Part shown: positions 5,961-50,493 of the stretch, in pieces
How positions within the stretch are numbered: the first letter of the stretch is position 1
Layout of the letters: each line of letters begins with the position of its first letter
Sequence record: NC_071015.1
Reading direction: 5' to 3' (one strand)
Length of the DNA: 64,000 bases
Made by a program: the position numbers and the translations under genes
Notes under the pieces: model-generated
What the model was told of the DNA's origin: nothing
The model's database searches: none
The model's input: the letters and a program-made list of their open reading frames with translations, nothing else

Positions 5961-7982
5961 TTAACCGCGAGCGATAGGATGCATGAACGCTTCCAATGCC
6001 CCACCTTGCCGATTTCGAGTCATCATGTTGTTTGGGTGACCCAGCAATGCACTTGCCTGCCAACCGTACAACAGACTGTTACCCAATCCGCGGTTCAGAA
6101 CTGCGTCGTGAAGACTGATAAAGTTACGCGGTTCGTCTCCGATCGGAATACCGTAATCCAGATGTTCCGGATCACGAGCCATACATGCCCACAAGAAGAT
6201 ATCGTGCATTACGATGTTGGCTTCTTTATACTTCTCGTCTACCACCTTCCAGAAGGCAATCATCGTCTCTCCGTGGATCTCTGGAGTGACTTTGACGTCC
6301 CAACGACGGTTAACGTGTGGGAACTTCAGGAAGCTCTCTACACGACGACGATACGCATCCAGGTCTTCGTTGACCTGAGGAAGTTCAAATGCCGGCTCTT
6401 TAAAGTTATAGTCTTTCAACGATATCTTAAAGGTACGGCCTTCTTCTTCCATGGGACGGGACAGGAGATACTCGATGAACGTTTTGGTCATACGAGCGTC
6501 ACGAGATGCGATAGTGGTAGTGAGAATAGGGAAATGCACCGCCTTCTTATTATCGAACATCGGGTTAACAATGTTGACACGCAGCTTGATCGACTCATAC
6601 GTACGCAGACGTGTAGTATCCAGGTCATCCAGGCTATCCATGAATTGATAGTCCGAGAAGTCCTGTTGGGTGTCTTTGTCCAGAATGATGTATGGATCCG
6701 ATTCCTCATTGAGGATATCTTTATGGAAATAGATAAAGTCGCCTGACTCATCGGTGGTGATGTAATCGGTATCGGCTCGGTTAACCACAAACCCTTTGGA
6801 TGTTGCAGTACCGATACGGTGTTTGGTTTTCAGGATAGACTGACCAATTGGTTCGGCAAAGGTGGAGCCATAGAACAATCCAGGAACCGCACCTTTTAAT
6901 GTATACGGGTTGTACGGAATCGCAGACTCCATCTTCCCGAAACATTTCGAACACGCTTTACCGTCGCGTCCGTGATTACACCAGGCCACCGAGCGAATAC
7001 GAATGGTGTCGCCGGTTTCCAGCTTTTCCAGTTCAGGGTAGGTCAGTAAGGTGGTGGATCCGTCTTCATTGATCATCCACTTACCAACCAGGGATTTCTT
7101 AAACTCTTTACTGATGAGTTTAAGTACCGGACCTGTTGTAGAACCACAATCGGTCTGATAACGAATCCCCTGCACCACCTGAGACACGTTGTGGATCTTT
7201 TTATGGAACCACTCGGAGTCTTGCAGCGCAGAGCCGTTACTGATCAGGGAGAAACCAGCGCCTTTGGAATCTCCCAAAGAGTCAGCCAGGTTGGTGATCC
7301 CATCGGCATAACTGGTTTTAACTGTATTCGGGAGAATTACGTTGTTCAGATCGAATACGTCACCACGAGAGATGATCAACTGATAAGACTGAACAGAGGA
7401 AACAGAACGGGTACGATAGAGCAGTCCGAAGACGTCTTTATCGAATTCCGGCTCGGTCATCATAATCTGTTCAAATTCTTTACCGGCGTCAGCCTGGCTG
7501 GTAATGCCTTCATCGACACGGCGTTTGAGATCAGCGATCTTTGGATGGCGATAGACATGCACAACGTTAACAGCACGTGCAGAAACTACCCCTACCTCTC
7601 CTTTAATTGAAAGATAGTTATGGCTTTGGTTATGCCACGTAAAGACCAGCTGTTTAATGAGATCGTAAAAAACAGGGTCGTCGTGTTTAACCATTAACCG
7701 CCCAAGGAAATTGTCAATCGGTTTCTTAAGCAGGTCATCATCAATAAATGCCTGACGTCCCTTCACAGACCTAAGAACCGCGAGTTCATCAATACAATAC
7801 GGTTCGGTATTAAAATGACGATGGACTACTAAACTGAACCAAGTCAACGCTAACATCCAGGTATCGGTGATTTCCTTGTCACCATGATCATCCATCACTT
7901 CAATTTTAACGCGTCGTTCGGTGAACTGAAGCATAGACAAGCAAGAGAGGTTAGCGAATTCCCGTAGTTTTATCGTCTTCAC
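5961..7982 (-). CDS. Non-virion RNA polymerase beta-prime C-terminal subunit (phiKZ gp74-like)
   Basis: DCG motif, RS-x3-C...C-x2-CFG zinc site and EPIGQSILKTKH bridge/trigger-region motif; follows the beta subunit. Confidence 0.9.
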   Translation of the reverse strand: MKTIKLREFANLSCLSMLQFTERRVKIEVMDDHGDKEITDTWMLALTWFSLVVHRHFNTEPYCIDELAVLRSVKGRQAFIDDDLLKKPIDNFLGRLMVKHDDPVFYDLIKQLVFTWHNQSHNYLSIKGEVGVVSARAVNVVHVYRHPKIADLKRRVDEGITSQADAGKEFEQIMMTEPEFDKDVFGLLYRTRSVSSVQSYQLIISRGDVFDLNNVILPNTVKTSYADGITNLADSLGDSKGAGFSLISNGSALQDSEWFHKKIHNVSQVVQGIRYQTDCGSTTGPVLKLISKEFKKSLVGKWMINEDGSTTLLTYPELEKLETGDTIRIRSVAWCNHGRDGKACSKCFGKMESAIPYNPYTLKGAVPGLFYGSTFAEPIGQSILKTKHRIGTATSKGFVVNRADTDYITTDESGDFIYFHKDILNEESDPYIILDKDTQQDFSDYQFMDSLDDLDTTRLRTYESIKLRVNIVNPMFDNKKAVHFPILTTTIASRDARMTKTFIEYLLSRPMEEEGRTFKISLKDYNFKEPAFELPQVNEDLDAYRRRVESFLKFPHVNRRWDVKVTPEIHGETMIAFWKVVDEKYKEANIVMHDIFLWACMARDPEHLDYGIPIGDEPRNFISLHDAVLNRGLGNSLLYGWQASALLGHPNNMMTRNRQGGALEAFMHPIARG

Positions 7983-10068
7983 GTTCTTTCCTCAAAGTTA
8001 AGCCAAAATCAGAAAACATGTTGTCAATTACCTGAAGAGAATGGTTCTTCTTCTCTTCACCCGGTTTCACCAATTCCGGGATTAAGAACGGATTGTCAGC
8101 ACGGATGATACGTTTCACACCCATCTCCAACAATTCCGCTGAGTTCGCCAAAGCCAACATACGAACCGCAGCAGCACCGCCTTTCTGGTTAATGAACAGA
8201 CGACCTTCAGTTTCACCCACGTTTCGGTTTAACGTTGCACGATAGAAATCACGAGCACGTTCATGTTTCGACAGAGACGTAGGCAGACCAAAGATATTCA
8301 GTTTCGGTGTAGATTGACAAGAAATATCATCCCCGAACTTATCCAGCATGATGTAATACACACTGCTGATTACGATAGGGTGTCGAGTACGGATAGTTTC
8401 TCCGAACTCATTTTCATACGTAACCGGGGTGGGTTGAATCTCTGGATAGTTATCCACCAACCGCTCGATGATTTTCACACCTTGCAGGTCATTGGTGTTG
8501 TTACCGAGGGCGCTGAATTCATTTTCGTCTTTCGCAATCCAGTGAAGATGGTTAATGCGCTGTTCTTCTGTGAACTTGTCAACGACCGCAGCTTGTTCAG
8601 GAGAAACGGTATCATAGAAATCGCGGGCAATTTTAAATGCTGCATCATAATTGCCGGCTTTGTACTCTGCCATGATCTTCGGATACAGATGGATATTGAC
8701 AAAGTTGATGTCAAGTTCCATAAAGGAGTTATAAATTTGACGTTTATACCCCGGCGTGTTACCAACGATCATGTCTGCACGGTTTCCGTAATCATCCACC
8801 GGAGCCATGTGGCTGGGGAGGATTTTCATGATAACGGATTTGTTTCCGTCCATCCCGGTATTTTTGAAACGAACTTTCCCTTCAACATCTTCACGCAGAT
8901 GGATCTGAATACGCCAATCTTTCAACTGGATATTCCCCATCTTACGTTTCACCTTAGTAAACTTCCCGTTGCTGTTAGGCGTGGTAAAGTCACGGGTGAT
9001 ACCACCGGCACCGTGGAAATGGATGAGGTTCCACAAATCTCTGGAGAGCGGGACTTTCTTGTTAATGTATTGGCGCTGTTTACTGCGATACCAGGTTACC
9101 AATGCATTCGCGAAAGCGTTCTGCTCTTCTTCGATCCGCTCCAGGATCAACGTGTGGGGTTGGGTACGTTTCTCGGCACGTTTATTGTTGGACAGGTTTT
9201 TATACCGCTCTGTTTCAACAACGATGTCGGCTACAACACAACCCGGTGAACTGTAGAACAGGATATCGTAAATCGGATCCGGTTCCATCAAAGCTTTCTT
9301 AGTTAAGGAAGCCATGGCGTTATCGGTATCTTTACGACGAAAACCCATCACGATCCCATCGGGACGTACACGTTGTCCGGACAGTGGGAACGGTTGATGG
9401 TTGTTCAAATCACCGTACAGGTTAAGCGGAACATATTCATCTTCGTTCCACTGATGTTCGTGACTGCGTTTAAACGTTACCCCAATTTTCTTGGCATAAT
9501 GTTCAAAGATAACTACGGCGTCCTCTTCGGTATAAACGTGGGACATCGCAGCAACCATGGTTTGGACACCAGGACACCACTCTCGGCTCTCGGTGATACG
9601 AGAAGAGGTGGCAAATACTGTGTTCTTACCGAATTTGGCTTTCTTCTGCAGTAGGCGGAGGAGATCATTGTTATAATGATACTCAAACCCGAGATCCATA
9701 TTTTGAGCATTAAAACGGGGCATCTCGAGTAAATCATAAAGTCCGGTCTCAAGATCTTTAACGATAACGTAAATGGTCCCCCACATATTGGGTTCTTTAT
9801 CGTTAAGGATATTCTTGACAAACAGAACTTCCTCGACCTCTATTTCAGAAGTGGTTTCAACCTTACGAGCTGTTCTAGCATACTCCTGCTCATCACCAGA
9901 AATGTATTTACGGTTCGTGCTACCCCAAATAACGGCAGCCTTACCTTGGTTTTTACCGAGCATGTACAAACGAGATGGTGAGTTTACAGATCGGTTGGTG
10001 TTCATCCCGATCGCCACACCCGCTGTGTTCGGCTTTATTTGGTTTTTCTGACTCATAATGCTTAACAC
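7951..10068 (-). CDS. Non-virion RNA polymerase beta C-terminal subunit (phiKZ gp71-73-like), uninterrupted
   Basis: KNTGMDGNKSV, ADMIVGN, YYIMLDKFG and RNVGETEGR are beta-subunit conserved regions. Confidence 0.92.
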   Translation of the reverse strand: MLSIMSQKNQIKPNTAGVAIGMNTNRSVNSPSRLYMLGKNQGKAAVIWGSTNRKYISGDEQEYARTARKVETTSEIEVEEVLFVKNILNDKEPNMWGTIYVIVKDLETGLYDLLEMPRFNAQNMDLGFEYHYNNDLLRLLQKKAKFGKNTVFATSSRITESREWCPGVQTMVAAMSHVYTEEDAVVIFEHYAKKIGVTFKRSHEHQWNEDEYVPLNLYGDLNNHQPFPLSGQRVRPDGIVMGFRRKDTDNAMASLTKKALMEPDPIYDILFYSSPGCVVADIVVETERYKNLSNNKRAEKRTQPHTLILERIEEEQNAFANALVTWYRSKQRQYINKKVPLSRDLWNLIHFHGAGGITRDFTTPNSNGKFTKVKRKMGNIQLKDWRIQIHLREDVEGKVRFKNTGMDGNKSVIMKILPSHMAPVDDYGNRADMIVGNTPGYKRQIYNSFMELDINFVNIHLYPKIMAEYKAGNYDAAFKIARDFYDTVSPEQAAVVDKFTEEQRINHLHWIAKDENEFSALGNNTNDLQGVKIIERLVDNYPEIQPTPVTYENEFGETIRTRHPIVISSVYYIMLDKFGDDISCQSTPKLNIFGLPTSLSKHERARDFYRATLNRNVGETEGRLFINQKGGAAAVRMLALANSAELLEMGVKRIIRADNPFLIPELVKPGEEKKNHSLQVIDNMFSDFGLTLRKEREDDKTTGIR

Positions 10069-10552: not shown

Positions 10553-12058
10553 TTAATAACCGTTCAGGTCGGCATACCCGTTAGTGAGTCCGTTACCCAC
10601 AGAGGTATTGTTCCCACTGTTAACGGTGTTCCAGTTATTCCCACCGTTGTTGTTAGGACCTGCCGGAACCATGCTACCGGTGTACGGATCACGAACAAAC
10701 CCGTTCGGTGTCATTCCACCGCCATTCCCAATCCCAAACATCGGGATACCGGAACCCATCGGCATTTGCTGTTGCATCATGTTCGGCATGAACATGTTGG
10801 CCGGCACCATCATCCCGTTAACACTTACCATCCCCATTTGCTGCTGAGGTTGTTGGAAGTCTTCAGAAATGAAACGACCGTCTTCTGCCAGGCGACGAAC
10901 ACGCACCATACCGTTTGCGTTCAGGAATTTGTATTCGTAAATCCCGTTACTCTGGGAGTACTCACAACCCTGATAGGTTTCACCCGGAAGGGGATCCGGT
11001 GCACGCGGTGCAGAGGAAGGAACCTGACCTGCATTTTGAACTGTTTGGTTGTTACCGGAAGAAGTGTTGATTACTCCTGCTAGCGGATTGTAACTACTGA
11101 TGCGTTGACCACCGCCATTGGAAGCTGGGGTTTCTGGTGCAGACGTCATGTTGTAGTTATTGTAATCCAGCGGTGGAATCAGTTTCTTGATTTCACCAAT
11201 TCCATCCAGTTCTTCCAGCCATTCCAGATCAACCCCATAAATGCCGATAGAATCGAACTCTTTACGGAACTTACCGATCAGGCTGTTCAGGTCAGAAACA
11301 ACCAGCGCGTAAGAATGCAGGTATGCAATCAGTCGAGCTGCATCCGGCGAGGTCGCAGAATAGCGTTTACGGCTCGGATCGATAACGGCCGGGATCGCCA
11401 GCTCAAACAGTGCAATCACAATCTGCAATGCCTGCATGGAAACGTTCGCCCCGTTAAACGTCAGACGGTCACCGTGTTTCATGTGCTCGTTCTGGCTGAC
11501 GGTACGATACAGTTCCGTATAGAACGGGAAGCTTGGCGTAGCCGTGTAATACGCGGTTTCGTCGTTATCTGTTTTTCCACCTTTAATAAGGGAGAAGTTG
11601 ATCAGACGGGTATCGACGTTTTGATCTTCCAGGGTGATGGAAATCATTTTGATGACTTCATGCACTTCCTGACGCACGGCTTTGCTGATGCTTTTGAACG
11701 GCTCAAGCAGCTCCAGCATCTTCCCGTTTAGGGTTTTACCAGACTTCTTCCCTGCCACGTTAACGATCACATCAAAGATCGGCTGGAAGGTGCTGTAAAT
11801 TTTTGCTGCCGTCAGTTTACGGATAACCTTGAAGATTTCCGTTTCTTTCGACATGATGGATTCACAGGCCGGATGGAAGAAGACTTTACCGATCGTTACA
11901 CCGTTCAGGTTTTCAGACGTAGGGAGATAAGTTTGCTTATCATCTACTTTTACCGGCACTTCTACTCCGCCCATATTCAGCATGAGTGCGTAATCCTCGG
12001 TAAAGCTTACACCCCAGGATTTCAGCATCGCTTCATACAGTTTGTTTAATTTGTTCAT
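10553..12058 (-). CDS. Core Chimalliviridae protein (phiKZ gp70 position) with a Q/M/G/N-rich disordered C-terminus
   Basis: Lies between the PicA candidate and the nvRNAP beta gene; low-complexity tail visible in the translation. Confidence 0.65.
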   Translation of the reverse strand: MNKLNKLYEAMLKSWGVSFTEDYALMLNMGGVEVPVKVDDKQTYLPTSENLNGVTIGKVFFHPACESIMSKETEIFKVIRKLTAAKIYSTFQPIFDVIVNVAGKKSGKTLNGKMLELLEPFKSISKAVRQEVHEVIKMISITLEDQNVDTRLINFSLIKGGKTDNDETAYYTATPSFPFYTELYRTVSQNEHMKHGDRLTFNGANVSMQALQIVIALFELAIPAVIDPSRKRYSATSPDAARLIAYLHSYALVVSDLNSLIGKFRKEFDSIGIYGVDLEWLEELDGIGEIKKLIPPLDYNNYNMTSAPETPASNGGGQRISSYNPLAGVINTSSGNNQTVQNAGQVPSSAPRAPDPLPGETYQGCEYSQSNGIYEYKFLNANGMVRVRRLAEDGRFISEDFQQPQQQMGMVSVNGMMVPANMFMPNMMQQQMPMGSGIPMFGIGNGGGMTPNGFVRDPYTGSMVPAGPNNNGGNNWNTVNSGNNTSVGNGLTNGYADLNGY

Positions 12059-13602
12059 AATTTAAAATATGCCTCGAGATTAGAGAAGAAGTTTGAACCA
12101 GCCTGTTGAGCGGTCATGCTGTCACCGAGAACGGTGGCGGTAGTGTTTACCGCGAAGGTTGGGAAGACGCGGCTGATCATACCCGCCGGAACACCAGTGT
12201 CTTCGATGTTGAACCCACAACCTTGATTACTTTCGTCCACCACCATGACGTTCACAATGCAGTTACCGAACAGTTCTGCCGTTACATCAAAACGAATCGG
12301 CGTCATTTGGTTAAGACGCAGTCCGTTGATTTTGGCAAAGATCTGGTTACGCAAGTCGTTAATAAAGCCATCGAGTTTGCTCGGTAACATGAAGTCGTCT
12401 TGTTCCAGCGACATCGGGTTATACGGCAGAATCGTGATATTATCCAGAGGACCGTCACCTCCAAAACTGTCACAGTTAGAACCACGGAAGGAAATTTCAG
12501 ATAACCCATACTTCATCATCAGATCAAGAATGTTGGCTTCGATTTCGTGAGCCATGAATTCCTGATAAGAACTGCCACCGAACCCTTCAGTATCCAGGGT
12601 GAAGTCATTAACCTGATACTGCGTTGCATCCATCAGAACCAGGTCGAGCACTTCATTGAGGTTTTCAAATGCCATCAGCAAATCAGAAACCATATAGCCT
12701 GTGAAGCCACGGTTGCTGGATCTGCCCATGATGGACATCATTTCGGCGAAGAAGTTGTCACGTAACAACTGCGGTTCGGTATTGCCAGCCTGATAGCTTA
12801 CCCCACTCAGCGCGTCAAACATGTTGTCGCTATGGCCTTCGGTGTACCCAACGTCCATGGTGCCGTTACCGATCAGGTTATTACGCTGATAGTTGGTACT
12901 GGCTTTTAACAGGTCTTCAGCGTATTTAGACGGGTTCATGTTCTGGCGTTTGGATGCAATTACCCCAACGCGAGAAATGTCTGTTCCGGCAACGGTAGTT
13001 TGCGGGACCATACCCGGAAGACCTTCATCTTCCATACGCTCCAGAATGTCACCTTGTGCAGCTTGTTCCATGGTGTAATCAATAACGTCATTTGGGCGTA
13101 ACGAAATCAAACTGGTGTTTGTGTTACCGCCGTCATTAAACAGATAATCAGTACGGTTACCGATATTGCGTTTAATGTTGGTTGGGTTATTGATGTCCAT
13201 CGAACTGGTGATGGTTTCTTGCGTTTTCCAGGACATTGTCGGGTGGAACATTGCCCCCAGGCTTAGTCCGCTCATTCCTTCGTTGTTGCTGACGTAGCCA
13301 ACGACATTCATGTATTCAACCATAACCGGACTGTCTTGAGTTACAAAGGTCATGATCATGATACCGCGAGACGTATTCCAACCGTCTTTGATTTCGGCGA
13401 AGGCGTTGGCCTGAGCATTCAGACCACCGGAGTACACTGCTGCACGTTGAATGGTGGATTGACTTACCCCACCGGCATAGTTTTCACTAACCAGCTCATC
13501 GATGAGCTGACTATCGAGATCCATCACTGGGTTACGCACAACCTGATTTTGATAGTAGTTGGTTAAACCTGCACGTGCACTTACCAGACGAATGCCACTC
13601 AT
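12055..13602 (-). CDS. picA: Probable phage-nucleus protein import factor PicA/Imp1 (phiKZ gp69-like)
   Basis: 515 aa, directly downstream of the gp68-like gene in the conserved order chmC, gp68-like, picA, gp70-like, beta. Synteny-based call. Confidence 0.6.
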   Translation of the reverse strand: MSGIRLVSARAGLTNYYQNQVVRNPVMDLDSQLIDELVSENYAGGVSQSTIQRAAVYSGGLNAQANAFAEIKDGWNTSRGIMIMTFVTQDSPVMVEYMNVVGYVSNNEGMSGLSLGAMFHPTMSWKTQETITSSMDINNPTNIKRNIGNRTDYLFNDGGNTNTSLISLRPNDVIDYTMEQAAQGDILERMEDEGLPGMVPQTTVAGTDISRVGVIASKRQNMNPSKYAEDLLKASTNYQRNNLIGNGTMDVGYTEGHSDNMFDALSGVSYQAGNTEPQLLRDNFFAEMMSIMGRSSNRGFTGYMVSDLLMAFENLNEVLDLVLMDATQYQVNDFTLDTEGFGGSSYQEFMAHEIEANILDLMMKYGLSEISFRGSNCDSFGGDGPLDNITILPYNPMSLEQDDFMLPSKLDGFINDLRNQIFAKINGLRLNQMTPIRFDVTAELFGNCIVNVMVVDESNQGCGFNIEDTGVPAGMISRVFPTFAVNTTATVLGDSMTAQQAGSNFFSNLEAYFKL

Positions 13603-21256: not shown

Positions 21257-22915
21257 TCAGTCCTCCGCGATAGGTTCGCTCAGCATTAACGAGTTGATGT
21301 TCAACAAGTTAGTTTTAGTGTGCGTCGCAAAGCGGCTGGTTTTAAACAGTCGATTTGGATCCAACATTTGATGGTGTCCCCAGCTACTATATGCTTCAAT
21401 CTTCGACATCATGTCGGGGATGAAGATAACGTACATTTGGTCGCCATCGAAGTCGGCCCCGTATTCCTTAACCGTGGTAATGGGAATACGAATGGATTTG
21501 TCATCCAGGTCACGACTGAATTGAACAAAGAACGCACGGGCTGAGAGATATTGAATCGACGGGTTTCGCCCAGCTGTTACCATTGCATAGCGGTTGGTTT
21601 CAATCCAGGTATAGAACTCTTCGATTAACGGGTGACGAGTGTGCGCTGCGGTACGGATGATCTCCTTGATCTTTAACGGAGTATACCCTTTACGGTATAG
21701 CCAGCTCGTCAGGTGTTTGTCCAGACAAGTTAACCCGTATAACCACGGCAACACAATAGTATCAGAACGACAGACGCCCGATTCACCGGTAATGATAGAA
21801 CGACCAGTAAACGGAAGTTTACCTGCACCGGCGTGATAACGAATCATCCCTTTCTTACCGAACAGGATGTTCTTCTGCACTTCCATCAACGCGTCAACCA
21901 AGGGTTTCATGTTTCGACCCATCAGTTCTTCGTTTTCTTCTTCAGCACGAACATCGTCACCCGGATAGGTATCAGCCAGGGTGAAGTAGATCTTGTCAAG
22001 ATCCGTTTGCTCTTTGTTAATGTAACGGTCACGTTGATCCGATTCCACCACGGTGGTGATTTTGTTCGGCAACGGAAGGTATTTAAAGACCGCTTTACTA
22101 TTGAACTTATCCCAGAAGGCCGCAAAGTTTTCACGGTCTTTCTCTGACAGGTCAACCACTTTACTGACATCGTGTTCAATTGCACCACGGATGATGTAAT
22201 CGAGATTATCAATAAAACTGTTATACCCGAACGGGACATTCAATGCAGCCCGGAATGCTTCGATCTTAGCTGCGATCTTGAATGCGTTGTTATTGGGATC
22301 CTTGAAGCGCTTCTCTGCTCGCACATCCGGGTTAATCCAGTACTCAACGAGATTAACTTTTGGGGATTTGGTATTGAGCTTGCTAAAGAAGATCGCCCAC
22401 ATGGCTGGACTTATGAACCCTGAAACAAAAGCTGGGCGTTTTAACCACACTTTGGTTTCAATTTTGGTTGCCAGCGGTTTGACCACTTCCGACCCACAGT
22501 TATCGCAAATAACATTCATGCCATCATAGATGTTACTGCGAAACTTTTTACATTGGCAAGACGCCACTGTATCGAAATTATTCCCTTCGTACTCAGTACG
22601 CAGGAGATCAACAACAGCCTGACGATGTTCTTCGATATTGAAGTCAAAGTCATTGAGATAGATCGGTGTGGTCACCGACGTATCGTGCTTCAAATCAAAA
22701 TCTTCAAAATCAGGATAAAGGGGTGTGTAAAACGTAGGATCATCTTTTCTTGGGGTAACACCCGAAGCTTCGATCATCTTATTAAAGAGTAATCCGGGGA
22801 CCATATTCTCATCCGCGTATTTACTCAGAATGTCTGCCATCGTACTTGACATAAAAAATAAACCCCTATAGTAAAACAGGGAGAGAGGGCTTTCACCCAC
22901 CCTCCCTGTTATCAC
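21257..22915 (-). CDS. Non-virion RNA polymerase beta-prime N-terminal catalytic subunit (phiKZ gp55-like), uninterrupted
   Basis: Catalytic ADFDGD, N-terminal CxC...CxxC zinc finger, FTGRSII and GRNPSI motifs; directly after chimallin. Confidence 0.93.
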   Translation of the reverse strand: MITGRVGESPLSLFYYRGLFFMSSTMADILSKYADENMVPGLLFNKMIEASGVTPRKDDPTFYTPLYPDFEDFDLKHDTSVTTPIYLNDFDFNIEEHRQAVVDLLRTEYEGNNFDTVASCQCKKFRSNIYDGMNVICDNCGSEVVKPLATKIETKVWLKRPAFVSGFISPAMWAIFFSKLNTKSPKVNLVEYWINPDVRAEKRFKDPNNNAFKIAAKIEAFRAALNVPFGYNSFIDNLDYIIRGAIEHDVSKVVDLSEKDRENFAAFWDKFNSKAVFKYLPLPNKITTVVESDQRDRYINKEQTDLDKIYFTLADTYPGDDVRAEEENEELMGRNMKPLVDALMEVQKNILFGKKGMIRYHAGAGKLPFTGRSIITGESGVCRSDTIVLPWLYGLTCLDKHLTSWLYRKGYTPLKIKEIIRTAAHTRHPLIEEFYTWIETNRYAMVTAGRNPSIQYLSARAFFVQFSRDLDDKSIRIPITTVKEYGADFDGDQMYVIFIPDMMSKIEAYSSWGHHQMLDPNRLFKTSRFATHTKTNLLNINSLMLSEPIAED

Positions 22916-22939: not shown

Positions 22940-24850
22940 TTAGTAATGGCTGTAACCGCCGTGCAGACCAATGGTGTTCGCCTGCATGTTCTGGTTGATC
23001 ATTGCGGTAATCGCGTAGTTCAGGTAATCGTTGTTGCTGTTCATGCTCCACATGGAGGCCATGTTAGAACCGGACAGAGACAGGACGCCAGCGTGTGCCA
23101 TTGCCTGAGCGAAGGTATTGAAGAAGGCGTTTTCCCAGATCAGACGACGGTTCCAACCTTCTACGATCACGTTTGCACCGAACAGCTGGTTCAGACGAGT
23201 GAAGATGTTGAACTGACGTACTTTCAGGTTGTCGCCACCCAGGAAACCGTTCACCAGACCCTGGTACTCGTGGATCGCTGATTCGTTGTTGCCGTAGTAC
23301 TGCTCCTGACGCAGGAACATGCCGTCAACTTCGGCCAGGTCGAACCATTTGCCATCTTTGCCCTGTGCGATACCGGCCGGCAGCATGATGTTGGTTGCTT
23401 TCAGGATCGCTTCACCCGGTGCCCAGTCTTTACGCGGATCGCGGTTAGCCAGGCTAGCGTTTTTCGCCGCCAGTTTGCTGAACTCACCTTTGGACAGAAC
23501 GTCCAGCAGATTGATCAGTGCACGGTGGTAGGTAGAGCTGGACGGTTTGGAAACCAGGTTCCACCAGAAGTCGCTGTTCGCAACGTCACGGCTGAAGGTT
23601 GCCAGATCCAGAACGTATACCGCGTTCGGCGCAACATAGGTGCTCAGCCACTGGTTAACAACCTGAGTGTTCAGGATGTTTTTGTCAGTGATGAACTGTG
23701 CAGTACCGTACGCACCCTGCAGAACCTGCGACAGGTAGAAGTTGAAGTTACCGATGTTACCACGGTTACCCACTTCTTTACCGCGCAGCGCTTCGGCGAA
23801 GTAGTTCGGCTGGTTAGCACCGATTGCACCGTACAGGCCCAGGAGTGCGGTCAGCATGCTGTTGTTGTTGTTCAGGGTTTCGCCCGGAACGGTAACACCA
23901 GTGGAGATAACCGGTACCAGAGGACCGACAACACGACCCGGGTTCTGCGCACGCGCTTGACCGAACTGAGACACCGACATCGCTTCCAGGCTTACGGTCA
24001 TGTAGTTGGTGGCTACAGAGCGGGTCTGAGAACTGTTCGGGTTCTGCGTGTTGTTTTTGTTGGTGGTGGAGATTTTCACCGCCAGGTTGTACGGGGTCGG
24101 CTGGCCGTCGATGGTCAGACGGTGTACCGGTTCGATACGGGCTACTGCTGCGTCGTCTTTGCCGAACATGTTACCGTCTTTGAACGGGTTAGGCATGTCC
24201 AGGTTCATGACCGTCAGATCCAGGTAGGCGATGTTCAGCAGCGCGGTGTGCCATTCTTTCAGAATGGAGGTACGCACGTCGATGATCATGTCTTCGTATT
24301 TGACGGAGTTTTTCACGAACGGTTCCAGATCCAGAACAGTCGGGGCCAGGATGATGACCTTTTCCATCTGCTTGCCGTCAACGTAGCCGTACTGCGTTTT
24401 CACTTTTTCCAGCAGCTGCATGTCCATGAAAGACGTGGCCGGTTTGGCGATACCGCGCGGTACAGATTCGTTTTGCAGGTAGATGGATTCGGTGACTTCG
24501 GTCACGCCTGCTTTGTAGAACAGAACCGGCATAACGTAAACGCGTGCGCCGATCACAGTTGACAGGGTGATGCCCGGCAGCTGAGGAGAGATGTCCGGCG
24601 TCATGTTCTGCACGTTTTTCGGCAGCGTCATTTTCTGCGCTTCGGAGGCGGTGTTTTTGTTCAGCGCTTTCAGAACTTCTTCGACACTTTTAACAACGTC
24701 GTTCACTTCGGTGATGCTGTTGTTGGAAGAGATGAGGTTCTGCGAAGTCAGCAGCGCGAACAGTGGGTTGTTTTTATCCACGGAGTTTTTACCTGCGTTA
24801 TTGTTGTTGGAAGAATTCTGGGATTCGTTGTTTAAAGAATCGAGAGACAT
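22940..24850 (-). CDS. chmA: Chimallin, major phage-nucleus shell protein
   Basis: 636 aa with an N/S-rich N-terminal arm and strong high-expression codon bias. It lies between the DNA polymerase region and the beta-prime N gene, as in known nucleus-forming phages. Confidence 0.85.
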   Translation of the reverse strand: MSLDSLNNESQNSSNNNNAGKNSVDKNNPLFALLTSQNLISSNNSITEVNDVVKSVEEVLKALNKNTASEAQKMTLPKNVQNMTPDISPQLPGITLSTVIGARVYVMPVLFYKAGVTEVTESIYLQNESVPRGIAKPATSFMDMQLLEKVKTQYGYVDGKQMEKVIILAPTVLDLEPFVKNSVKYEDMIIDVRTSILKEWHTALLNIAYLDLTVMNLDMPNPFKDGNMFGKDDAAVARIEPVHRLTIDGQPTPYNLAVKISTTNKNNTQNPNSSQTRSVATNYMTVSLEAMSVSQFGQARAQNPGRVVGPLVPVISTGVTVPGETLNNNNSMLTALLGLYGAIGANQPNYFAEALRGKEVGNRGNIGNFNFYLSQVLQGAYGTAQFITDKNILNTQVVNQWLSTYVAPNAVYVLDLATFSRDVANSDFWWNLVSKPSSSTYHRALINLLDVLSKGEFSKLAAKNASLANRDPRKDWAPGEAILKATNIMLPAGIAQGKDGKWFDLAEVDGMFLRQEQYYGNNESAIHEYQGLVNGFLGGDNLKVRQFNIFTRLNQLFGANVIVEGWNRRLIWENAFFNTFAQAMAHAGVLSLSGSNMASMWSMNSNNDYLNYAITAMINQNMQANTIGLHGGYSHY

Positions 24851-47882: not shown

Positions 47883-47958
47883 GCTTCTGTAGTTCAGTCG
47901 GTAGAACGGCGGACTGTTAATCCGTATGTCACAGGTTCGAGTCCTGTCAGAAGCGCCA
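47883..47958 (+). tRNA. tRNA-Asn (GTT)
   Basis: Acceptor GCTTCTG/CAGAAGC, anticodon loop CT-GTT-AA, TTCGA T-loop, encoded CCA. Confidence 0.97.
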
Positions 47959-48005: not shown

Positions 48006-48093
48006 GGAGAGTTGGGTGAGTGGCTGAAACCACACCCCTGCTAAGGGTGCATACCTTCGGGTATCAAGAGTTCGAATCTCTTACTCTCCGCCA
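48006..48093 (+). tRNA. tRNA-Ser (GCT)
   Basis: Acceptor GGAGAGT/ACTCTCC, CT-GCT-AA loop, long variable arm with TTCG, encoded CCA. Confidence 0.96.
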
Positions 48094-48133: not shown

Positions 48134-48502
48134 ATGAAAGTAGTTATCTACGGTCGCCCTAACTGTCCTTGGTGCGATAAAGCTAAAGAGCTGTGTGACA
48201 GCGAAGGCATTGAGTACGAGTATATCAATATTCGTGAAGTGGGGATCGACGGCGTTAAACTGTCTCAGATTTGTGGTACAGAAGTTACCACGGTTCCGCA
48301 GATTCTGGCTGACGGTGTTCACATTGGCGGATACGATAAATTCGCTCCTTTTGTTTCTGAGAACGAAGTAGAGAATCCAAACATGGATTACTTTGTTCGG
48401 GAACGCGGTGAAGGCGATTGGCAAAAGGCCAGTTTCGAGTATTACACTCGTTGTAAACCGTTGTACGAGATGGATTACAAGAAAGAGCCGAAAGTAATAT
48501 AA
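48134..48502 (+). CDS. Glutaredoxin with a C-terminal extension
   Basis: CPWC active site, TVPQI and IGGYD. Confidence 0.9.
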   Translation: MKVVIYGRPNCPWCDKAKELCDSEGIEYEYINIREVGIDGVKLSQICGTEVTTVPQILADGVHIGGYDKFAPFVSENEVENPNMDYFVRERGEGDWQKASFEYYTRCKPLYEMDYKKEPKVI

Positions 48503-48540
48503 TCCCTATTATATGTCAGGAAGTGTATGTCTAGCTTTTG

Positions 48541-48894
48541 CCGCCTATAGCGCGCTTAAGAAGGGTATACCAGTTGACATCCAGGGATTGTAAGACCTTC
48601 CAGTGCCGTGTGTGGCGATTGGGAAGGCGACAACCCCCGTGCAGCTTTCACCTGTTGCGGGGGATTAAATCCAAGAGTGAACGGCGACTTAAGTTCGCTA
48701 CTGTAAGTAGCTCTTGGTGGGTGGGACCTCTGAAAGGAAGAGGTGCTGTCGCAACGCGTTTGATAGAATGTCCAGTAGCATAAGCTGAATGCATCTCCGG
48801 CGTAATCGTCGGGACTATGTTGGTAGAACCCGAACTCCAACCTGGGCGGTTATAAAAAACAATATCTATCTTAACTGGGAACGTTGTACCCTTT
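48541..48894 (+). ncRNA. Candidate large structured RNA
   Basis: Several local hairpins plus long-range helices in a region without a credible ORF. Strand assumed from neighbours and G-U wobble pairs. Confidence 0.5.
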
Positions 48895-49183
48895 ATCCTT
48901 AACCTTTTTGTGCCAGCAGTCGAATTCAGAATAAGCTACAAACTACATCATACCTGACGATGAGCCTATTCCTGATCGAACTGATTTGGCACATCTCTTT
49001 AGAGTGGTCATTAATTGATCATTCTTACCCGCTTGGGGGTTCTGAACGAAAGCGACATATCTACCGTTATACAGCGCTGATGCTCACAACGGTTCAGAAG
49101 GGACTTGATAGTCTTCCTTTACGCGATATCGGAACCCCCAACCACATCTACATGACGGTATAGTGTAGATCCCATGGGGTGGG

Positions 49184-49287
49184 GCGTCGAAACATCTGAA
49201 GAGTCCATCGACGAGATAAATAATGTGGACGAAACGGGTTTCACTACTAGGTATTCCAGTTACCTCAGTGAAACCGTCATGTCGAGC
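49184..49287 (+). ncRNA. Type I hammerhead ribozyme
   Basis: CUGAAGA (49196-49202), stem II GUCCA/UGGAC, GAAA (49231-49234), stem III, GUC cleavage triplet (49276-49278), stem I ACAU/AUGU. Confidence 0.88.
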
Positions 49288-49647
49288 TGTGCCTTAACCG
49301 TGAGCAGCAACCGAGGGGAAACCAAGGTTAAAAAGAAGCGTTATAAGGAATGGGTTAAATGTTAGCAGGATTGGACAACCTTTTGGAATCCTTTTCTGCT
49401 TGGGCAACATTAATCACATTCATAACAAACGGTCCGCTCTTTGCCCGAGAGAAGTTGTTGACATCAATGTAGACAGCCCTTTGAAGATTTGGTTTGTAGC
49501 TTGGGGTTGCTCCCAATCTGCCTATCGAGTCTTTCTTGGAGTGTTTGCCATGACACCTTACATATCCCCTACTCTGCCTAATGGTGGGGTAGGGGTTTAT
49601 GTTTGCCTTTTGATCTTTTGTAAGCTTACAAAAAGAAAGGAACATTT

Positions 49648-50493
49648 ATGAACCCAGTTGATTTCTCAATTGACTATGTCATGAATGGTGCGAATAACAT
49701 TAGCGAATATTTGCTCAAGCTGGCCTTTGAAAACCCCAACAACGGGTACGGGGCAGTATGGGGATCCATTAATAATGAATTCTCCATTGAGCAAGGTATT
49801 CGTGAAAAGGTTATCTTGAAGATGGTCGCTCCGATGCTCCAAGTGGCAGGCGGAACAACCGAGATTATCGATCTCTCCAGTGCACTGATCAATAATCTTC
49901 AAGGCGGCATCATTCATGTTAACGTCCCCGATTTCTTAACCGGTGGACGGCGTATCCTGGAAGTGGTTGAAGTTTATCCGGGTAATATCAATCGTGCTAT
50001 TACTAGCGGATACAATTTCTCTAACTACGCCAGCTGCGGTGCTGGACAAATTAACAACTCCTTAAACCGTCTGATCAACGGTCTGGATGATGGTAATGTT
50101 CAGCGTACATTCACAAGCTTCACGATTGTCGGAAACAACTCCTTCCTGATTCGTGATGCTGGCTCGGCATTGTTCAACATGCTGGCCAAAGTCATTCTCT
50201 CGTATGACGACAACTTCTCTGTTGTTCCTGTGAAGATGTACGACAAGTTTTATGAGCTTGTTGAGTTAGGGGTGAAAGCCTACATCTATAAGAAGTGTAA
50301 ACGAGGAATGCAAGAAGCGGTCTCTCGTTTCGGTGTTACCGTTGATGACTTGCAAGATGATCTGCAAGAGTTCTCCAGTGCGGCTCAAGAGTTCAAAGAG
50401 TTCTATGAGACCCAGATGAAGAAATACATGGCGTACGCTGATCCGAAAGGTAAAGCTGATCAAATTAAGATGATTACTCCGAGGAAACGGTAA
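49648..50493 (+). CDS. Probable virion structural protein
   Basis: 281 aa, RBS AAGGAA; head of the plus-strand operon. Confidence 0.6.
   Translation: MNPVDFSIDYVMNGANNISEYLLKLAFENPNNGYGAVWGSINNEFSIEQGIREKVILKMVAPMLQVAGGTTEIIDLSSALINNLQGGIIHVNVPDFLTGGRRILEVVEVYPGNINRAITSGYNFSNYASCGAGQINNSLNRLINGLDDGNVQRTFTSFTIVGNNSFLIRDAGSALFNMLAKVILSYDDNFSVVPVKMYDKFYELVELGVKAYIYKKCKRGMQEAVSRFGVTVDDLQDDLQEFSSAAQEFKEFYETQMKKYMAYADPKGKADQIKMITPRKR

Follow-up and report, generated by a model that had tools for sequence, protein, structure and literature searches.

Hammerhead ribozymes are self-cleaving RNAs whose Mg2+-assisted chemistry leaves 2',3'-cyclic phosphate and 5'-hydroxyl (5'-OH) ends. To our knowledge, thousands of bacterial and phage hammerheads have been found and almost none has been assigned a biological role. 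Here we examine a hammerhead encoded on the plus strand at positions 49185-49282 of a 64,000-nucleotide (nt) stretch of sequence record NC_071015.1, hereafter the window, which is 100% identical to Kosakonia phage Kc263 (MZ348422, 253,740 base pairs (bp); a record coordinate minus 124,000 gives the window coordinate). The ribozyme adjoins a conserved structured RNA of ~680 nt, here called module A. Our assessment, evenly balanced between acceptance and doubt, is that the hammerhead would be the built-in 3'-processing domain of an undescribed class of ornate ~680-nt non-coding RNAs specific to OBP-like nucleus-forming jumbo phages, a class encoded beside transfer RNA (tRNA) genes and often paired with a second structured RNA of ~280 nt.

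Hammerheads occur in phage intergenic regions, and pseudoknot contacts between stems I and II, present in ~40% of them, are needed for fast cleavage (PMC3088659). The closest described relatives of the Kc263 element are the type I hammerheads with a pseudoknot between stem I and loop II (PMC3088659; RF00163, clan CL00010). With these it shares a 13-nt core, the GUC triplet at the cleavage site, a three-way junction whose stem I is open, the pairs G10.1-C11.1 and A15.1-U16.1, a pseudoknot in the 4-7-bp range and a phage intergenic location. Unlike them, it has a long stem III (~40-44 nt in two helices) with a conserved YUCCAR loop and a stem I of 3-4 bp, scores below the Rfam gathering threshold, and is fused to the 3' end of a ~680-nt RNA.

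Two other viral systems offer partial parallels. The theta ribozymes of gut phages, which are minimal hepatitis delta virus-like ribozymes, are likewise small self-cleaving RNAs in tRNA-containing non-coding regions of tailed phages, and protein-independent processing of RNA ends has been proposed for both (PMC10879173). They belong to another class, however, and abut tRNAs and trim 3' trailers (PMC10879173), whereas in Kc263 ~1.1 kilobases (kb) separate the ribozyme from the nearest tRNA, and its direct neighbour is a large RNA that is not a tRNA. The hammerhead of the haloarchaeal virus HF2 is also virus-encoded and upstream of a polycistronic gene block, which makes it a precedent for a role at a messenger RNA (mRNA) 5' end (PMC3088659); in Kc263, unlike HF2, a structured RNA, a terminator-like hairpin and a promoter-like TATG stand between ribozyme and genes. 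Literature searches for hammerheads in jumbo phages, or for non-coding RNAs of Kc263 or OBP, returned nothing relevant, and ribozymes go unmentioned in a 2026 review of jumbo phage biology (PMC13282480).

Structure and conservation of the Kc263 hammerhead

An earlier annotation made from the sequence alone, here the original prediction, had placed an intact type I hammerhead at this site. Direct reading of 48900-49800 agrees with it: each listed element is found where it was placed, and all of its coordinates are correct. The elements, all on the plus strand, are as follows.

49185-49189, plus strand: 5' strand of the pseudoknot, CGUCG, pairing with CGACG of loop II (49209-49213)
49192-49195, plus strand: 5' strand of stem I, ACAU, pairing with AUGU (49279-49282)
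49196-49202, plus strand: catalytic core C3-U4-G5-A6-N7-G8-A9, CUGAAGA, by direct reading
49203-49208 with 49225-49230, plus strand: stem II, GUCCAU with GUGGAC, one U-G pair longer than the GUCCA/UGGAC given originally
49203-49230, plus strand: stem II with loop II, a loop of 16-18 nt that holds CGACG and a conserved A-rich tail
49231-49234, plus strand: core G12-A13-A14 and A15.1, GAAA, invariant in all sequences
49234-49277, plus strand: stem III as a whole, in two parts, ~44 nt
49234-49237 with 49274-49277, plus strand: base of stem III, ACGG with CCGU, invariant, with G49238 bulged
49239-49245 with 49267-49273, plus strand: middle of stem III, UUUCACU with AGUGAAA, 6-7 bp among relatives
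49249-49253 with 49261-49265, plus strand: distal stem III, AGGUA with UACCU, 4-5 bp among relatives
49254-49260, plus strand: loop of stem III, UUCCAGU, conserved as YUCCAR
49276-49278, plus strand: cleavage triplet GUC, with the predicted scissile bond between C17 (49278) and A1.1 (49279)
49279-49282, plus strand: 3' strand of stem I, AUGU, the sole part of the ribozyme that would remain on the 3' product

The hammerhead core is represented by CUGAAGA, GAAA, U49277 (U16.1) and C49278 (H17, non-G), and the strands run in the order stem I 5' strand, core, stem II hairpin, GAAA, stem III hairpin, C17, stem I 3' strand. Stem I is open and stems II and III are closed by loops, which is the type I topology. 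The scissile position follows from established hammerhead numbering, and the cleavage site proposed originally, after 49278, stands as a prediction from that numbering and the GUC triplet.

A descriptor consisting of CUGANGA, the stem II hairpin, GAAA, a stem III whose first pair is A-U, any base but G at position 17, and stem I was scanned over both strands of the window and returned exactly one site, the hammerhead at 49185-49282. Dinucleotide-shuffled windows gave 0.023 loose matches per shuffle, and none of 300 contained a site equally good.

The same type I hammerhead is found at the syntenic site in 13 related phages and contigs, which span five viral genera, unclassified phages and metagenomic contigs; the hosts of the hammerhead-bearing phages belong to at least seven genera, from Pseudomonas to Shewanella. 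By BLASTN, conservation of the non-coding block extends to OBP, Serratia phages Sureiya and Yubaba, Klebsiella phage N1M2, Pantoea phage Survivor and Shewanella phage SXP01, and in all of these the hammerhead core is found at the corresponding position. Two further members are Erwinia phage AH04 and a 1.2-kb metagenome contig, and unbiased retrieval by means of the neighbouring protein alone recovered the ribozyme in five of five IMG/VR loci. There is one copy per genome, always at the fixed syntenic site. Conservation at this locus in relatives had been named beforehand as a check on the motif, and the core proved intact in all 13 members. Core alignments comprise 12 sequences (AH04, fetched later, has the same core), in all of which CUGA, GA, GUC...GAC, GAAA, CGGG...CCGUC and three loop II adenines are invariant. 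N7, which is A, C or U, is the sole variable position of the catalytic core, as is expected for hammerheads, and the GUC triplet is invariant in 13 of 13.

All four pairs of stem I covary (for example ACAU/AUGU, CUAU/AUAG and CACC/GGUG). The G10.1-C11.1 pair of stem II is invariant and its fourth pair covaries between CG and UA, while each of the 11 variable pairs in stem III shows compensatory changes, with 100% of cells paired; the stem III fold is also recovered from each sequence individually. The structural alignment was made by hand with N padding, and MAFFT returned it unchanged. It places 96.9% of cells in standard pairs, as opposed to 29-44% when the partners are slid, and shows compensatory double changes in 19 of 28 pairs, pseudoknot included; no shuffle reaches any of the observed measures. 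The three helices are likewise found in an alignment fitted by a covariance model, where 89.9% of cells are paired as opposed to 30-42% when slid. Built from 11 members, this model gives Kc263 90 bits and the two members it had not seen 91 and 83 bits, and its single significant match in the window is the hammerhead. G-U pairs and the asymmetric core fix the element to the plus strand.

The pseudoknot (49185-49189 with 49209-49213) comprises 5 bp and forms a stem I/II tertiary contact, with a predicted effect on cleavage rate. Three of its five pairs change in compensation (CG/UA/GC, AU/GC/CG/UA and UA/CG), with CGUCG/CGACG, UGUCG/CGACA, CAUCG/CGAUG and GUUCG/CGAAC among the variants in relatives, and RNAalifold found this helix independently on a plain MAFFT alignment with no manual input. 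The original prediction had suggested that loop II could pair with the flanks of stem I; the pairing with the 5' flank holds and covaries, whereas the 3' flank alternative is specific to Kc263. A stem I extended through the 3' flank was rejected as well, being restricted to Kc263 and pEt-SU. The terminal loop of stem III (49254-49260 and its equivalents) keeps the sequence YUCCAR even though the helix below it covaries freely, which suggests a tertiary contact or a protein-binding site. A covarying partner for this loop was sought in the adjacent hairpin loop and the CUGGUGGG block, and none was convincing. That the element is a genuine hammerhead under selection for catalysis is, in our judgement, nearly certain.

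Module A and the neighbours of the ribozyme

The RNA to which the hammerhead is joined lies directly upstream of it.

48504-49183, plus strand: module A, structured non-coding RNA of ~680 nt, with conserved blocks in 11 phages

Module A is contiguous at its 3' end with the hammerhead and is at least as well conserved as the neighbouring proteins. RNAalifold, run on a plain MAFFT alignment, finds 73 pairs in 14 helices, 42 of them with compensatory change, and the long-range helices include GGGU/ACCC, GCAACG/CGUUGU and UCCAG/CUGGG. Cells are paired in 89.1% of cases as opposed to 35-45% when the partners are slid, a control that is somewhat generous because the structure comes from the same alignment. 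Many G-U pairs fix this RNA to the plus strand, too. Two loci (L009 and L011) are without a central domain of ~200 nt, and a scan of IMG/VR with a module A pattern returned the same phages and one chance match (L050).

No conserved open reading frame was found in module A among the relatives, and a coding explanation was rejected. The Kc263 annotation places a 63-residue hypothetical protein (QYN80068.1; coding sequence (CDS) 49174-49365, plus strand) over the hammerhead, and N1M2 has a minus-strand CDS, N1M2_252 (170 residues; L004 1868-2380), over module A. These are not conserved in position, strand or frame, and since neither has a counterpart in relatives, both are probably spurious gene calls. 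Hammerhead annotation is absent from all GenBank records of Kc263 and relatives that were inspected.

A search of module A (48495-49190) against all 4227 Rfam families gave no match at E<=10, the 11 relatives gave none at E<=1, and no similarity was found in Escherichia coli genomes. These results led us to reject RNase P, a ribosomal RNA (rRNA) fragment, a group I or II intron, transfer-messenger RNA, GOLLD and ROOL as identities; a few short resemblances to RNase P and 23S rRNA motifs fell with the same negative searches. Module A resembles GOLLD and ROOL in its length of hundreds of nucleotides, its many covarying helices, and its non-coding, phage-borne nature near tRNA genes. It is unlike them in that its hosts are jumbo phages of Gammaproteobacteria, as well as in the Rfam result, and we know of no self-cleaving ribozyme that forms a terminal domain of GOLLD or ROOL. 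Module A is a candidate new large phage RNA.

Kc263 and its relatives share a gene order of tRNAs, glutaredoxin, ~1 kb of non-coding sequence, two virion-protein genes and thymidylate kinase. The Kc263 features around module A and the hammerhead are as follows.

47883-47958, plus strand: tRNA-Asn (Rfam 76 bits; ARAGORN)
48006-48093, plus strand: tRNA-Ser (Rfam 54.7 bits; ARAGORN)
48134-48502, plus strand: glutaredoxin/thioredoxin-like CDS (GenBank, Kc263), which stops immediately 5' of the non-coding block
49283-49565, plus strand: module B, structured non-coding RNA of 283 nt, opening with the hairpin GCUGUGCCUUAACCGUGAGCAGC
49566-49605, plus strand: terminator-like hairpin CCCCUAC...GUAGGGG and UUUAUGUUUG, including TATG at 49598-49601
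49648-50493, plus strand: first gene of the downstream virion-protein pair (DUF7484; Pfam PF24302, E = 8.6e-84)

The two tRNA genes show that the upstream context is transcribed on the plus strand. A sigma-70-like match (ATTACA-18-TATAAT, 10 of 12 positions) lies at 48474-48503, at the end of the glutaredoxin-like CDS and just 5' of module A; such matches are no more numerous there than expected by chance, and phiKZ-like phages are independent of the host RNA polymerase. The product of the 49648 gene is 80% identical to OBP gp010, annotated 'putative virion structural protein', in agreement with the virion gene proposed originally.

Module B begins directly after stem I. RNAalifold gives it 53 pairs, 22 with compensatory change, and its motifs include the opening hairpin and CAAACGGUCCGCUC...GAGAGAAGUUGUUG, among others. 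It is present at 10 of the 13 hammerhead loci, one of which (L011) has an insertion of ~60 nt in it; Survivor, SXP01 and pEt-SU are without module B and have the hairpin directly 3' of the hammerhead. The hairpin at 49566-49605, conserved with covariation in relatives, has a 13-pair stem (8 G-C) followed by TTTATGTTTG, the form of an intrinsic terminator, and the phage RNA polymerases may terminate there. After the hairpin comes a conserved UUUAUG, and most relatives, like the Aeromonas phages, keep the TATG within this U-run, which in Kc263 lies 47 nt 5' of the virion gene ATG. In phiKZ, the non-virion RNA polymerase has a late-promoter consensus of TATG, with G as +1, plus additional sequence (PMC4666361). 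The TATG at 49598-49601 matches this late-promoter and start-site consensus, by analogy with which it may be used as a promoter in the Kc263 clade. Because the conserved TATG matches that consensus, the virion operon probably has its own transcription start. Hairpin and TATG, an arrangement kept even in the Aeromonas relatives, may form one unit that joins a terminator to a late promoter.

Hammerhead and module A co-occur in 13 of 13 loci, and the hammerhead co-occurs with nothing else in this way. The telling comparison is with the Aeromonas phages PS1, pAEv1810, D6, AerS_266 and CF8, which share the virion genes (63-69% identity), thymidylate kinase, the tRNA/thioredoxin context, and the hairpin with TATG. 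Their loci contain no hammerhead by descriptor, Rfam or covariance-model search and no module A by nhmmer; extra unannotated tRNAs occupy the gap. Among these, Rfam recognises tRNA-like genes that GenBank does not annotate at L054 1544-1625, L055 1888-1965 and L052 439-519 (PS1, AerS_266, pAEv1810). Pieces resembling module B are also found in Aeromonas phages without a hammerhead. The ribozyme had been tied originally to the virion gene, an association that is not supported here: it tracks module A throughout and is missing from phages that have the same downstream genes. Nearly the whole ribozyme, pseudoknot strand included, lies on the module A side of the cut, with 3-4 nt downstream. Module B is dispensable, three hammerhead-bearing phages being without it.

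Possible consequences of cleavage

The architecture of the locus suggests the following sequence of events. The hammerhead would be transcribed on the plus strand within a non-coding transcript of ~1.1 kb between the tRNA/glutaredoxin genes and the late virion genes, and would be assembled from the last nucleotides of module A, its own stems II and III, and 3-4 nt of downstream sequence. Folding would be co-transcriptional and followed by cleavage after C49278. The predicted 5' product is module A with the complete ribozyme, ending in a 2',3'-cyclic phosphate; the 3' product would carry a 5'-OH and, in Kc263, consist of module B and the terminator hairpin. Because stem I is so short, this 3' fragment, held by 3-4 bp, would dissociate. 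Such a cut would serve the protein-independent maturation of the module A 3' end, removing downstream RNA, the terminator hairpin and the U-tail and leaving a structured end capped by a cyclic phosphate, and the release of module B, where module B exists, would be a by-product. Autonomous 3'-end maturation of module A is the most economical specific purpose we can propose, with as much reason to hold it as to withhold assent. We place the same even weight on the account as a whole, in which 49185-49282 encodes a functional type I hammerhead with a pseudoknot-stabilised fold and predicted self-cleavage.

Several points weigh against this account. Stem I is very short, with 3-4 bp in general and just 2 contiguous bp in pEt-SU, and the hand-made structural alignment was fitted to the model in stem III. 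Rfam hammerhead models, suggested originally as a check, align the core and stem II and fall short of the threshold. At gathering thresholds the window yields two tRNAs only and no hammerhead call; a local E-value scan with RF00163 (Hammerhead_1) gives Kc263 16.6 bits against a threshold of 34, and the best score of any Rfam hammerhead model in a relative is 23.7 bits. In the Hammerhead_1 alignment the core and stem II match perfectly, and the 4-bp stem III of the model is forced onto the start of the 44-nt stem III, so that stem I is mispaired. Rfam misses the element because its stem III is ~44 nt long and its stem I has only 3-4 bp, a failure that reflects a length variant and not a core defect. 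The isolated element also has a competing fold: the 113 nt in isolation have a minimum free energy (MFE) fold other than the hammerhead, of unremarkable stability (z = -0.97). The nested hammerhead fold at -22.4 kcal/mol, together with about -9.3 for the pseudoknot duplex, is comparable to the MFE of -30.3, and MFE folding of an isolated element is uninformative for a pseudoknotted ribozyme. Finally, 3'-end maturation is argued from architecture and co-occurrence, and cleavage and transcripts in the hammerhead-bearing phages are predicted.

The original prediction had given the cut another role: it would free the virion mRNA from a tRNA/non-coding read-through transcript, with a 5'-OH that resists RNase E and is useful inside the phage nucleus. 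The ribozyme does lie upstream of the virion genes on the same strand at 13 of 13 loci, and the proposal is at its most plausible in Survivor, SXP01 and pEt-SU, where ~170 nt separate the ribozyme from the start codon. In HF2 the 5' end of the major polycistronic transcript maps within 3 nt of the hammerhead site (PMC3088659), and the phage nucleus is reported to keep host nucleases out (PMC13282480); a ribozyme may plausibly be needed because host RNases are shut out. In Kc263, however, the 3' product does not open on the virion mRNA, as originally proposed, but on the 283-nt module B, followed by the strong terminator-like hairpin and U-run and then by the TATG with its phiKZ late start consensus. 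The position upstream of a structural operon holds for order and strand, but not for adjacency. The distance from ribozyme to gene ranges from 170 to ~1036 nt across loci, and the Aeromonas phages keep virion genes, hairpin and TATG without any hammerhead. We consider this role unlikely. A related possibility is that the ribozyme mainly makes the 5'-OH end of module B, punctuating two non-coding RNAs as tRNAs punctuate polycistronic transcripts. Module B is structured and starts 4 nt past the cleavage site, and in the Aeromonas phages the equivalent region is preceded by the extra tRNA genes, which are processing signals. Yet three hammerhead-bearing phages do without module B, module-B-like sequence occurs in Aeromonas phages without the ribozyme, and the ribozyme with its pseudoknot strand lies almost wholly in the upstream RNA, which leaves this role quite unlikely.

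Regulation and decay have also to be considered. A factor, or the way in which module A is folded, might be sensed by the pseudoknot, the YUCCAR loop or the A-rich loop II, so that cleavage would set how much RNA is intact at each stage of infection. The stem III loop keeps its sequence though dispensable for catalysis, competing alternative folds exist, and Perreault et al. describe pseudoknotted hammerheads as well suited to allosteric control (PMC3088659). Against such a switch, no ligand-binding or alternative-pairing element covaries, nor does any partner of the stem III loop, and constitutive cleavage is a simpler account of the data; we regard it as very unlikely. The sub-threshold Rfam scores, the short stem I, and the fact that many hammerheads reside in selfish elements (PMC3088659) might instead point to a chance match, or to a selfish element that has decayed to an inactive relic and does nothing for the phage. 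This reading is disfavoured, and we find it scarcely credible: none of the 300 shuffles held a comparable site, the catalytic bases are invariant from Pseudomonas to Shewanella hosts while the stems change compensatorily, and the element is single-copy at a fixed syntenic site.

Lineage and wider setting

Kc263 is a myovirus related to Pseudomonas phage OBP (PMC8402661), which is among the chimallin-encoding phages (PMC10299810). The window encodes a homologue of the nuclear shell protein chimallin (open reading frame 22940-24850, minus strand; phrog_4795, E = 4e-116), pieces of a split RNA polymerase (beta at 5961-7982 and 7951-10068, beta' at 21257-22915), and a divergent family B DNA polymerase, a further marker of the phiKZ/OBP lineage. 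The nuclear shell protein genes of the Kc263 lineage carry hypothetical-protein annotation only. Homology supports the placement of Kc263 in the nucleus-forming, chimallin-encoding jumbo phage lineage, so that the nucleus-forming phage of the original prediction is upheld at the level of the lineage by the shell protein homologue and the split polymerase subunits.

A scan of metagenomes with a hammerhead pattern gave 30 loci, of which L043 and L044 alone belong to the Kc263-type family; the other 28 were rejected as members, being generic hammerheads or chance matches. One unrelated 17.5-kb IMG/VR contig (L014) has three hammerhead-like sites within 3.4 kb, at 8864-8953, 11168-11249 and 12131-12208 (31.7, 21.3 and 21.9 bits with the covariance model), and this trio looks like the hammerhead clusters reported in phage-like regions. 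A metagenomic type I hammerhead at L023 92-189 (the same sequence as L035) may be a distant cousin of the jumbo-phage family. Its loop II (CCGGUAUAUAAAUAAGG) is similar, its flank might form a CCGG/CCGG pseudoknot, and its cleavage triplet is GUA.

The Kc263-type hammerhead is a new, unannotated subfamily of a well-known ribozyme class, and the ribozyme itself is not surprising. What is notable is its context, the fusion to a large and apparently undescribed structured RNA in nucleus-forming jumbo phages. The analysis exposes ~1.1 kb of conserved structured RNA in a region that annotations leave blank or place under spurious open reading frames, and it shows that annotation by Rfam thresholds misses hammerheads with a long stem III. 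A single copy at a fixed site, fused to a large RNA, makes the purpose of this hammerhead directly testable in a tractable system. If the hammerhead is indeed a 3'-processing domain, these phages would make an RNA on the scale of GOLLD and ROOL whose maturation is autonomous of host RNases, and the ribozyme would provide an experimental handle on the function of module A.

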